In this document: piece after piece, positions 21,682 to 55,900 of the stretch | Numbering within the stretch: position 1 is the first letter of the stretch | Layout: each line of letters starts with the position of its first letter | Source of the DNA: Pelomyxa schiedti | Taxonomy: Eukaryota; Protista; Evosea | Assembly (NCBI GenBank): GCA_020536535.1 | Contig: JAHLWZ010000693.1 | Span: forward strand, 62,001 to 126,000 | Direction: 5' to 3' | Length of the DNA: 64,000 nt | The notes under the pieces: model-generated | Seen by the model: the letters and a program-made list of their open reading frames with translations, nothing else | Database searches by the model: none | What the model was told of the DNA's origin: nothing | Program-made: the position numbers and the translations under genes

Positions 21682-23407
<1,726 letters not shown>

Positions 23408-23408
23408 G

Positions 23409-23513
23409 ACCTCCCCTTTACATAAGCAGACCTTGGTGCATAAGCTACCAAACTGACTGACCACTGAGCATGCGAATACCGCAGTGCACTGGGTCTGCAG
23501 CAAAAGGGGGGGT
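23409..23513 (+). promoter_or_regulatory. Long imperfect hairpin immediately 3' of the TrxR Sec/stop codons (SRE-like candidate)
   Basis: ACCUCCCCUUU (23409-19) pairs with AAAGGGGGGGU (23503-13), GCAGACCU (23426-33) with GGGUCUGC (23491-98), and GGUGCA (23435-40) with UGCACU (23485-90). Pairing was done by eye and the function is unproven. Confidence 0.55.
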
Positions 23514-23549
23514 GTAAAACACCTCTACACAGCAGGCTGATAACGCGGG

Positions 23550-23644
23550 TCTGGAGGTGTGCTCTGGTGACGAAGTGGGACAACAAATACCTGCTTGGTA
23601 ATGTTCTGCTACTGATGATATTGAGCACAAGAAAAACCTCTGGA
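23550..23644 (+). promoter_or_regulatory. SECIS element, type II, GUGA core variant
   Basis: Helix I UGUGCUC (23558-64) pairs with GAGCACA (23623-29), extended by 23550-58 with 23636-44. Core G-UGAC (23567-71) faces UGAU (23613-16). Helix II GAAGUGGGAC / GUUCUGCUAC has 9 of 10 pairs. There is an unpaired AACAAA and an apical mini-helix UACC-UGCUU-GGUA. It lies about 166 nt downstream of the UGA. Confidence 0.88.
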
Positions 23645-23727
23645 ACCACGTTTTGGCCAAATCCACGACACAAACCAAACCTATCCAATTAAAAACACAA
23701 AGACAAACTAAAAGAAAGTACTTTTTG

Positions 23728-24195
23728 TTACTCCAAGCTCTTTCTAGTCTTTTTTGTGAGCCCGCCCCTGATTTCCTTGAAGATGCGATCAACTTGCAAC
23801 TTGTTGAAAGCTTCGGAACCCGAGTGGAAGGAATACAACGCGGAATCAAATCGTTGAACGAGGCTGTGGTTGCAACAAGAGTTATTCAGGCACAGATTTC
23901 TGAGGGTCAGGAGATGTGCCTCCAGCATCTCAAGCGACTTCTGAAAACGAGCAATGGCGCGTTGGGCGGCCGACACCGAAATCAGATCGCAACTTGCGCG
24001 TTCAAGCACTGAAGTCAGAATTGTGGTGAGCTCGTCACTGGCGCACTCGAGCTCCTCGTTGGCGTCGCACACGTGATTGGCACAATCACGGATAGAGAGA
24101 GGGTCCTCCTTCAGAGTGAGATTTGCAACCTGCGCACACAGAGTGTTGATTTGTTCCGACAACGACGGTTGTTCTTCTCGTTGCATGTCTGCCAT
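23728..24195 (-). CDS. Hypothetical helical/coiled-coil protein
   Basis: 155-codon ORF MADMQREEQPSLSEQINTLCAQVANL with an A-rich start context (aaaaacaacATGG) like other genes here, divergent from the MFS gene. No family recognised. Confidence 0.5.
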   Translation of the reverse strand: MADMQREEQPSLSEQINTLCAQVANLTLKEDPLSIRDCANHVCDANEELECASDELTTILTSVLERASCDLISVSAAQRAIARFQKSLEMLEAHLLTLRNLCLNNSCCNHSLVQRFDSALYSFHSGSEAFNKLQVDRIFKEIRGGLTKKTRKSLE

Positions 24196-24399
24196 GTTGT
24201 TTTTAATCAGCAGGAATCCTGTTGTGTGTGATTCACTCGTTGTGTAAAACGACTTACTTCCCTGGGTGCGGTATTCCGTAGTCTTGGACAACGCCTCGTG
24301 CTCGGTGCCTCTTTTTCGTTTTGCTGTCCGTTTTGTTTTTGGTTTCCCTTAAAAAGTGCCGAAAAAAACTTGACCTTATCACCGGTGACCTGTACATTG

Positions 24400-33225: not shown

Positions 33226-34334
33226 ATGGCCAGTGCTGCGCGTCCGGGTGATGAACGGTCGCGGGTGGGTGGTTTTTGATGGGTTTTTAATATTTGCAAA
33301 CCAGTAGGTTGTGTTGCTATGATTGATTGGACATGCTTGGATGAATTCCTGCTGGCTGTAATTTTGTACCAATTACCGCATAGGAGCTTGTGAGTTACAG
33401 CAAAGACGTTTTTTTTCCCACTGCTGACAACTACTCGTATTGATGAAGGTTTCGGGCTTCCAGGGTGTGTAAGCGTTGGCACTCAGTTATTAAGAATTTG
33501 GTCAATGATGCAGAATATTGGCACACTTTGTGTGAAGTGAGGTGCTCCGATGTTGCAGGCATAATGGCAAGGATGCCGGAGATTCCATTACAGAATGGAT
33601 ATCAATTCTTTTACGTGGTGTGCCGTGCAGTAAAAAAAACCTCTTCAAGCAAGCCTATATAAAGTGTAAGAAAATCTCAATGCCACAAGAACTTTCTACG
33701 TGGACTTCAACAAGGTGTAAAATTAATGAAGGACCCGTATATCGGAGCTCCGTATTTCACCCATTCTTGGTCGTGCAACGTATGCAATTACAATTCCAAA
33801 ATCCCAGTCTATCATTGTATGATGTATGTATTTTCCTAGAGTGTCACGTGGCCGTTAATGCAACATAAACAGATGCTCTGTTTATGATATGTGCCCCAAT
33901 TGTTACGCTAAGGGGCGCCGAGGGAGGCACGACTGCGTGAGGATGACAGATTGGTATATTATATCCACTGTAGTGTGCCTGTTGAATATCACTTACAAAA
34001 AGGTGGTATGCAAACTATCGCCGCTATGTCACGAAACGACCTCCAACAGTTGAGGTAAGCAAATTACTCACACTGAAGGCCTCTGCATCCCAAAATACTG
34101 CAGCACGAGGTATTTGACTATCTCCAAATGCGTACTTACCTTGCACTGCACTACATCCCAAAAGACTTGATGAAGATATCGCTTAACTTTGAAGAAACTG
34201 AACCTGGGATGGAGGAATGGGACCTGAATGATGACGAAGACTGTGACGATGAAGATTTCACTGATGAGGATGAAGATTTTGAGGTAGATAGAGAACTGTC
34301 AAGCAGCAGTCTCAGTGAAGACGAGGATTCATGA
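33226..34334 (+). CDS. F-box protein with acidic C-terminus
   Basis: DWTCLDEFLLAVILYQLPHRSL...VCKRWHSVI..DAEYWHTLC resembles an F-box, and the gene ends in a D/E-rich tail. Confidence 0.65.
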
Positions 34335-52942: not shown

Positions 52943-55900
52943 TTAATCCTCTATCATGTAAGGCGATAGTTTCTTGAAGTCCAGTGGTTCAAAGGCATAC
53001 CCGTCACCCTCTGTGCAAATGTGAGTTGGGGGAAAAAGGATTAGGATGGGATAGTACGGTAGAATTTGTTTTGAAACTCCACCCTGGATAAAAATTACAA
53101 TTAGCTAAACAGCCAGTAAAAAAGAAAGGGAAAACCAATGAAGTCGAAGTGCGTGCAAGAAAGCGGATAGCGCCTCCATCACCAGAAGTACACCAATGGT
53201 TGCTCCTCCCCAAACGGCGAAGCCAGCAAAAATTTCTATGAAGTTCTTGGACTTGATTGTTGTAAGAAGCACTTGCTCGTAAAACACCAAAGACAATTCT
53301 GTGAGATGCTTAAGAAAATAGGGTACATAACAAACTCATACCGGCATGTGCCAAGCTAAGTGCCCAAAGTCGAAGGTAAGATGCAGTATTTGAGATGCAT
53401 CCCAGAACGAACTCGATTGTGTGAATTGCTTGGTGAATGAAGGCCTCACTGAAAACAAACTCTTCGCCGTGGCCTCCATGGCCTCCCCCTCCATGTGATT
53501 CTGGCGTTGTTACAGCACCTATAGCCTCTAGCTCCACGTCCTCACTAGCTTCCTTGAGAATTACATGTTTAGCTGCACGTTTGCTCTGCCACAGTTGAAT
53601 AAATGGCTTTGGCAGTAGCATAACGAAAATTGCAATGACAGAGACTATAGCAATGGCTGTTTGGACCGACGCCTGATTTGTAAATTAGAAGCCTATTCAA
53701 CAATAATGAGTGGTAACCTGTCCAGGGTACATCTCCTCCTCCTTAGGTAAATTTCCGAAGGACAAAAATATATCAATCAGAACGTTAATGAGGTAGGGCT
53801 CATTTTCACGCATTTTTGTCCATTTCAGGAAAATTAGGACAACCAAGTAACCAAACAGGAGGTTCATAAACAGAATCTGATGCATGAAGAACATTAAATC
53901 TCGGGAGAGAATCAAAGGGGGGATGTAACTTGTGGTATGAAGTCAAAAATAATGTTGAGAGGCTTTCGGAAGTGAATGTGATTAAACAAACCCATGATAA
54001 TTCCCAGTGTCATCTTCATACTCTTAGTGATGAACAAATAAGAAAAAAAGAGAAACCTGGACGACCCCAAAAATTACTGATAACTTCATTTTGAAGGAGT
54101 TGTAGTAATAAAGTTCGTTATCGGCACCTTTCCAAATCTATTTAATGTTATCGGTGAACCCCTCCAGTACGATGCATACAGAGTCTACACCGAATTCGTA
54201 TACTCTGTCCGGGTCCTTAGTACACCAGTTGTTTTCATCACAAGTCCACGCGGTACCACACAAATTCACACCAATTCCAAAAACCTTCATGGATAAGTTA
54301 TCGAAAGAGTGAATGATCATTACGTCGTTGTAGATGAAACCAGTGAAGATTGAAAAGAGAGCCATGAACAACAAAAGATACCGCCCATTGAACAGCATGA
54401 AAACGATCTAGGGAAGATTTACACATCACCATAAAAGAGACAAGTTCCTACCTCATTCAACTTCATCTTTCCCATTTTTTTCTCGAAGAATATCAGACAC
54501 AATGTGAATAGTAGCATCATTACAGCATGTCCTGTATCCCCAAACATCACAGCAAACAAGAAGGGGAACGTTATCAACGAGAATACCGCTGTAAACAGTC
54601 ATTGATTGTGGAAACGGGCGAAAAGTTCTACTTGGGTTGACTTCTCCATAGCGAGGTGTTCCATAGGCATCAATGATAACTTGCATACAGTAGGTAAATT
54701 TATTTGTTTGGTAAAACGTGGGAGGCTCCTCATCAATTGGTATAATGCTCATGATAGTAGCTACCTGGGAGCCACTTCTGGCCTTTTAGGTTATCAAAAT
54801 TAGGTTTCTGGTGGGGTAATAGGTGTATTGCTCTTACAGTTGCTCTGTTAAGAGCATTCAATATCTCATCGGTGGCACTCGTTGGGCACCAGCCTTCCGC
54901 AATGAGGCATCTGCATATGGGTTGGGTATTAATGGAAGGTGAAGAAAATGGAGACATACTTTCTACCAACATCATAGTTAAACATGTTTAATGTGTGATA
55001 TGTGGCCTTTTCTTTTCTTACTAGAATAACCCACGTGGGCATTGACTGGTTGACAGTAGCAAGCAATTCTCTGCGGTGTTGTGATGACCTCTCAATCACC
55101 TGGAAGGTGGGAGAAAAAGGGAAAAACTCATGTAGAGAACACACAGTTTTCATGTCTTCAAGTCTGCCAGAAACCTGGGTGAGCAGAGTTTGGCGTTCAG
55201 TGTTTGTTTCTGGTACATTAAAGACTCGTGCGCTGAAAGATTCGCAAATTTTGTGAATTTTCACTTGCGATTGCTGCCCCTGGCAAAAAATGAAGAATAC
55301 ACATTTCTCTACAGGTTCGCCCTGGGTGATACGTTAAGTTACAAATGGGAATAACTCAGCTTACTGTTGATGGGTCAACAATCTTCTCCTCAATAGGCTC
55401 AACTTTCATTACCAGATTACCACGGAGGACACGCCACAAAACACGCTCAAAATGAACAAATTCCGTTTTTGATATAACTCCTGCCACCATTCTGAGGCGA
55501 GTTAAACGTAAAAAAGGAATGCAGTTGTACTTACACAAGCTTGCCCACAGAACCTGCTCCTCCCTCCTCCAACAAATTCTTCTTATTTATGTCATCTGAA
55601 CTTATTTCCATATCCTGTTTCCCAAAGAAAACCGATCACACAAGGTTGAGCAAAAAAGAAAGCATACTGGGAGTGTCTCGTCATACATGTTGCTCTTCAG
55701 GGCGCACCGCATCTCAGTCAACTCATTGAAATTTCTAAGCAATACTTCTTGGTTGCCGTTAATTTGTCGTAAATCGCGCTCTTGAGTATCAAGGAAAGCC
55801 TGGTAATATGAAATTAAAGGTAAAAACTCCAAAACAAAAAATTTAGATACCTCAAGTTCGCTGAGATCCAATGGTTTTTCTGGTGGCGGTGCTGTGCAAA

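Follow-up and report, generated by a model that had tools for sequence, protein, structure and literature searches.

In the anaerobic, free-living archamoeba Pelomyxa schiedti, the single gene for a high-Mr thioredoxin reductase (TrxR) is very probably a selenoprotein gene, one in which an in-frame UGA codon is read as selenocysteine (Sec) by means of a SECIS element downstream of it. The gene lies on contig JAHLWZ010000693.1, in the 64,000-nucleotide stretch of DNA that we analysed (the window, whose numbering is used for all positions at this locus). The genome, 52.4 Mb in 5337 scaffolds, is known for its very intron-rich genes (PMC8887013), and the assembly that was searched for the genome-wide parts of this work contains 52,367,397 bases in 5337 contigs.

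The TrxR gene occupies 21697-23407 on the + strand and consists of five exons separated by four short introns of 82, 50, 44 and 44 nt, all with GT..AG ends (intron 1 is 21861-21942). Its coding sequence of 1491 nt specifies 496 residues, the Sec included. The junction between exons 4 and 5 was placed by eye in this gene model, and homology searches were made with the spliced model, exon by exon. The parts of the gene are:

21697-21860, + strand: TrxR exon 1, with the ATG at 21697 and, in its translation, the FAD-binding GGGSGG motif; Pfam FAD and Pyr_redox_2 N-terminal matches
21943-22150, + strand: TrxR exon 2, with the redox-active CVNVGC disulfide motif in its translation
22201-22720, + strand: TrxR exon 3, NADPH-binding domain (Pfam Pyr_redox_2 4e-27, Pyr_redox 2e-18)
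22765-22985, + strand: TrxR exon 4, Pfam match to the C-terminal part of Pyr_redox_2
23030-23407, + strand: TrxR exon 5, dimerisation/interface domain (Pfam Pyr_redox_dim 1e-28), ending Gly-Cys-UGA-Gly-TAA
23399-23401, + strand: in-frame TGA, the predicted Sec codon, with GGT (Gly) next and then the true stop, TAA, at 23405-23407
23408-23733, + strand: TrxR 3' untranslated region (3'UTR), its 3' end approximate, from RNA contigs with TrxR splice joints

The Pfam matches, taken per exon, include the FAD, NADPH and dimerisation domains of the pyridine nucleotide-disulfide oxidoreductase fold, and exon 5 aligns with human TrxR1 over residues 374-497 of 499 without end gaps (E 2e-50), the HP..E motif included. 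Judged by its predicted protein, the gene encodes a TrxR of the high-Mr (animal) type. The last Cys before the TGA aligns with Cys497 of the human enzyme; thus the TGA falls at the position of Sec498, the GGT at that of Gly499, and the TAA ends the frame. At 23393-23407 the sequence is GGA TGC TGA GGT TAA, with another GGA codon just before it (G-G-C-UGA-G-stop), while the six-frame ORF list ends the protein at ...GAKGGC. The initial annotation of this DNA had noticed that the ORF track stops at ...GGC where the DNA continues G-C-UGA-G-stop, and had taken the UGA for the Sec codon of a high-Mr TrxR; the reading of the DNA is correct, and the human alignment places the codon exactly where that proposal put it. 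An exon-wise search of the assembly gave no copy of a high-Mr TrxR other than this one, and a model search for a low-Mr TrxR, likewise made exon by exon on the draft genome, matched only other, unrelated flavoproteins.

Expression of the gene was followed in assembled contigs from four single-cell RNA-seq runs, all belonging to one study. All four introns are skipped exactly in spliced RNA contigs: intron 1 in contigs X1 and X3, and introns 3 and 4 in contigs from 3-4 runs, with the intron 2 joint also present. The TrxR contigs begin at 21682, pass through the TGA, the TAA and the hairpin described below, and reach 23710 (X3) and 23733 (X4). The hairpin at 23558-23629 therefore belongs to the TrxR mRNA, and the message extends past 23629, as the proposal in the initial annotation needed it to. 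The exact 3' end of the mRNA is not fixed, since the RNA data are assembled contigs; an end near 23733 would agree with the AATTAAA seen at 23689 and with a convergent gene whose stop lies at 23728. That convergent gene (23728-24291, - strand) is a 187-aa ORF that terminates at 23728, and with the TrxR 3'UTR reaching to about 23733 the 3' ends of the two genes must abut or overlap. The RNA contigs compared with the locus leave the convergent gene uncovered.

The kink-turn core of SECIS elements, with its tandem G.A pairs, has the consensus UGAN / KGAW, and its conserved part excludes the base before the UGA (PMC3753652). The TrxR 3'UTR contains a hairpin whose UGAC/UGAU core fits this consensus, and its predicted parts are:

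23558-23629, + strand: predicted type II SECIS element as a whole, from folds, a grammar scanner and the UGAN/KGAW core, inside the transcribed 3'UTR
23558-23564 with 23623-23629, + strand: helix I, 7 bp, with an internal loop between it and the core
G23567 and UGAC 23568-23571, + strand: 5' side of the core (GUGAC)
23572-23582 with 23602-23612, + strand: helix II, 11 positions made up of 10 pairs and one A.A
23583-23587, + strand: unpaired ACAAA, in which the AAA is 23585-23587
23588-23591 with 23597-23600, + strand: mini-stem of 4 bp with a 5-nt loop
23613-23616, + strand: 3' side of the core (UGAU)

The core begins 165 nt past the TrxR UGA, and the hairpin lies 151-222 nt past the TAA. Its inner fold has an energy of -9.7 kcal/mol and its helix I duplex -14.6 kcal/mol, and a 101-nt fold around it gives z = -3.7. 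A type II hairpin with the SECIS quartet, the AAA and the mini-stem had been proposed for this place in the initial annotation, at about 166 nt after the UGA, and all of these parts were found there; the 10-bp helix II described with them does have ten pairs, and it spans 11 positions once its A.A is included.

How often such a hairpin arises by chance was estimated with a scanner for the SECIS grammar. Both strands of the window gave two matches, and 23558-23629 is the only one in the TrxR 3'UTR. The other (55326-55371, + strand; GUGAU...ACAAA...UGAU) lies antisense in an exon for V-ATPase subunit a and has weak helices (-3.7/-8.8 against -9.7/-14.6 kcal/mol for the TrxR hairpin); it was set aside as fortuitous and provides a false-positive control from the window itself. 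In twenty dinucleotide shuffles the grammar was matched 1.05 times per 128 kb, never with both helices as stable, and from these shuffles about 0.003 matches are expected by chance on the correct strand of the 326-nt 3'UTR. As modelled, then, the hairpin at 23558-23629 qualifies structurally as a type II SECIS element, and a function in recoding is predicted for it.

Covariance models were less informative about this element. The Rfam SECIS models (SECIS_1 and its relatives) gave no match at E <= 10, either in the TrxR 3'UTR or in the whole genome. As a control the same models were applied to a hairpin found downstream of the P. schiedti SPS2 gene (below) and to the canonical AUGA...AAA...GA SECIS of the closest TrxR homologue, and they missed these also; since both control protist elements escape them, the negative Rfam result carries little weight. 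A covariance model made from the TrxR hairpin alone found only itself, missing the SPS2 hairpin even with filters off, and was dropped as too sequence-specific, and a MAFFT alignment of three SECIS elements mis-registered their cores, so no multi-sequence model was made. Finally, the pattern GTGACG..AAA..CTGATG matched the genome 13 times, against 10 for a reversed control, and among the 13 only the TrxR and SPS2 sites are clear SECIS-like hairpins (helix II was checked by eye). The strict core therefore does not serve to recognise SECIS elements across the genome.

The closest database homologue of TrxR exon 5 lies on a 1.19-Mb ENA contig. A word search found no close relative, its best match having 70% amino-acid identity; this homologue ends GGC-TGA-GGT-TAA and has downstream of it a type II SECIS built on the same plan, whose inner part measures 40 nt where that of Pelomyxa measures 41 nt, a likeness that concerns two sequences only.

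The initial annotation had supposed that this lineage keeps the full eukaryotic Sec machinery, and most of it is present in the genome. A tRNA-Sec gene with a UCA anticodon at G000:C1146:9231-9316 reaches 67.9 bits where the cut-off is 47, and ARAGORN calls it tRNA-SeC(tca); its 9/4 cloverleaf combines an acceptor stem of 9 positions and a D stem of 6 bp with a long extra arm and a T stem of 4 bp, and a T-run terminator follows it. SepSecS is represented on contig C80 by collinear exon matches down to 7e-27. A gene on contig C87 has the motifs of eEFSec, and its best PDB match is human eEFSec (5izk, 1e-16, against 5e-6 for EF-Tu); candidates for eEFSec on C4, C206, C389, C804, C856 and C843 proved to be eEF1A, HBS1/eRF3-like, eIF2-gamma or EF2 and were discarded. 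The eEFSec-like exon matches on C87 form two sets about 8 kb apart (G000:C87:25506-26201 and 33517-34206, - strand), which could be a tandem duplicate or assembly redundancy. A gene on C857 is probably PSTK from its sequence, in that it matches PSTK models only (TIGR03575 5e-9, TIGR03574 4e-4) and its PDB matches, although weak (E 0.8), are to archaeal PSTK alone; its separation from KTI12 is not a rigorous one.

A Sec-type SPS2 gene lies on contig C4. The reading frame closes exon 1 with L-K-G-TGA-G and, across a short intron, goes on as G-C-K-I-P-Q in the following exon, so that the UGA sits at the canonical Sec position of the K-G-U-G-C-K motif. About 80 nt past its stop is a hairpin with GUGAC, a helix, an AAA, a mini-stem and UGAU. 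The G in place of A before the UGA, to which the initial annotation had drawn attention in the TrxR hairpin, lies outside the UGAN/KGAW core; it is common to both SECIS elements verified in the genome and is therefore no oddity. A second SelD homologue (G000:C853:67668-68775, - strand) is not the Sec-type SPS2, for it is a Cys-type selenophosphate synthetase homologue with the sequence G-M-G-C-A-C-K; within one open exon it is fused to a NifS-like protein (cysteine desulfurase or selenocysteine lyase), at the C-terminal end of the latter.

The component of the supposed full set that did not appear is SBP2. The exon-wise search of this draft single-cell assembly for L7Ae domains matched RPS12, NHP2, SNU13, RPL7A and RPL30 only, and a search of that kind on such an assembly does not imply that SBP2 is absent. 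Two of the ribosomal proteins seen here, L7a (G000:C340:4330-5341) and L30 (G000:C834:35822-36623), have long Lys/Ala/Pro/Glu-rich repeat extensions, which take the form of N-terminal PAEK repeats in L7a and of a K-rich tail in L30.

These findings bear on a first alternative, in which the UGA is a real stop and ...Gly-Gly-Cys is the C-terminus. The enzyme would then be a truncated version lacking the Sec centre, or else its gene would be a former selenoprotein gene in decay, and the hairpin would be there by chance or as a relic. The standard reading does give an intact ORF up to the UGA, and the undetected SBP2 and the silence of Rfam on the hairpin would agree with it. On the other hand, a Gly codon and a stop directly after the UGA are the universal ending of Sec-TrxRs, the hairpin keeps every SECIS feature where chance would hardly supply one, and the genome retains tRNA-Sec, SepSecS, eEFSec and a Sec-type SPS2. 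Moreover, as this is the sole high-Mr TrxR found and a low-Mr TrxR went undetected, a truncated enzyme would leave the organism with no detected functional TrxR. We therefore consider termination at this UGA very unlikely.

It might also be supposed that the UGA is read through without selenium, as Cys or Trp, by a near-cognate tRNA or at a relaxed stop, to give a Gly-Cys-Cys/Trp-Gly end, and Cys can indeed replace Sec in some TrxRs (PMC8038987). The neighbouring upstream gene, however, ends at an ordinary TGA (ORF end 21367), so the genetic code here is standard and has not been reassigned. In addition, the genome has a dedicated tRNA-Sec together with its biosynthetic enzymes, all apparently intact, and a SECIS-shaped hairpin would be needless for such a mechanism, which we regard as extremely improbable.

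The 3'UTR contains a further structure, a long stable hairpin at 23409-23513 (+ strand) that starts two bases past the TAA, formed between a C-rich and a G-rich run (-44.7 kcal/mol, z = -3.3). The RNA contigs of two runs break within it, at 23491-23520. That Sec is inserted at the UGA but under the direction of some other 3'UTR structure such as this one, rather than of 23558-23629, is an idea that its stability would favour, yet there is barely any likelihood of it, since the long hairpin has neither the UGAN/KGAW core nor an unpaired AAR motif, the 3'UTR has only the one SECIS-grammar match, and it is the architecture of 23558-23629 that the SPS2 3'UTR and the closest TrxR homologue share.

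Our preferred reading, recoding of the UGA as Sec under the direction of the hairpin at 23558-23629, would proceed as follows. The ribosome would meet the UGA at 23399-23401, with a single sense codon left before the stop, and the kink-turn SECIS 165 nt downstream in the 3'UTR would recruit eEFSec with Sec-tRNA(Sec), normally by way of a SECIS-binding protein. Sec would then be inserted, one Gly added, and translation stopped at the UAA. The predicted product has a flexible C-terminal Gly-Cys-Sec-Gly redox centre, to which the other subunit's N-terminal CVNVGC/FAD centre would supply electrons for transfer to thioredoxin. We infer Sec insertion, SECIS function and enzyme activity from the structure and transcription of the gene, the placement of its UGA, the shape of the hairpin and the machinery present. 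The recoding mechanism is the standard eukaryotic one and is well known; it is new only for the Archamoebae.

Among known systems the closest precedent is AcTrxR-L of Acanthamoeba castellanii. This TrxR-L ends in UGA-GGT-UAA, a SECIS is predicted in its 3'UTR and its database entry stops short at the UGA; Naegleria also has one (PMC8038987). Like the Pelomyxa enzyme it is an amoebozoan, vertebrate-type high-Mr TrxR with UGA, GGT and UAA in succession and a 3'UTR that contains an AAA-motif SECIS; the Acanthamoeba SECIS, however, is predicted to be of type 1 and to lie 282-355 nt past the UAA, whereas that of Pelomyxa is of type II and lies 151-222 nt past the TAA. Acanthamoeba has in addition a small bacterial-type TrxR, of which the genome search detected no counterpart in Pelomyxa, and Pelomyxa, unlike Acanthamoeba, is an anaerobe of the Archamoebae. 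With mammalian TrxR1 (PDB 2j3n, 3ean) the Pelomyxa protein shares its domain order, the CVNVGC centre, the HP..E motif and, by prediction, the C-terminal Gly-Cys-Sec-Gly. It differs in that its gene, from a protist, is interrupted by four introns of only 44-82 nt, and its SECIS differs from the mammalian ones in the G rather than A before the UGA and in going unrecognised by Rfam SECIS_1.

The hairpins themselves resemble those of Dictyostelium discoideum, all of whose SECIS elements are of type II with an unpaired AAA (PMC2375036). The TrxR and SPS2 hairpins of Pelomyxa are likewise type II with AAA, and both are GUGAC...UGAU, but the core is preceded by UGUA in Dictyostelium and by G in Pelomyxa; the five selenoproteins listed for Dictyostelium do not include TrxR (PMC2375036). 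Entamoeba histolytica, a related anaerobic archamoeba, uses a low-Mr TrxR (PMC6155587), as the initial annotation had correctly stated. That enzyme does the same job of passing electrons from NADPH to thioredoxin, but it belongs to the bacterial-type family and is without a Sec centre.

Other selenoprotein families were also sought by Pfam in the whole draft genome, exon by exon. Nothing was found for Rdx (SelW/T/H), GPx, DSBA, SelS or deiodinase; Sep15 gave a single match far below the family cut-off, and one to SelK was rejected as a low-complexity false positive. The redox set of the organism thus appears unusual, in that this exon-wise search of a draft assembly found no low-Mr TrxR, GPx or Rdx-family gene.

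Full-text literature searches found no report of selenocysteine in Pelomyxa, Mastigamoeba or the Archamoebae, and it is absent from two genome papers, PMC8887013 among them. The new point is a modest one: an anaerobic archamoeba apparently retains Sec decoding and depends on a single Sec-TrxR. A wider reading can be offered tentatively, as a possibility rather than an expectation. Because no low-Mr TrxR is detectable, P. schiedti, a strict anaerobe, may run its whole thioredoxin system on one selenium-dependent high-Mr TrxR; Sec may be ancestral in the Archamoebae, with the Entamoeba lineage having lost it and come to rely on a bacterial-type TrxR in a switch tied to reductive parasitic evolution; and UGA recoding in P. 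schiedti may operate with an SBP2 that has diverged strongly, or with none at all.

For practical purposes, the TrxR gene is probably mis-annotated in public databases, and a public gene model that ended at the UGA would miss the catalytic Sec-Gly. The other selenoproteins of the P. schiedti genome will likewise need specialised annotation, and selenium supply may matter for the culture of Pelomyxa. Taken with tRNA-Sec, SPS2, SepSecS and eEFSec, the TrxR gene indicates that Sec decoding persists in a free-living anaerobic archamoeba, whereas the parasitic Entamoeba has a Sec-free TrxR, and evolutionary reconstructions of the redox systems of the Archamoebae should take the Sec-TrxR into account.
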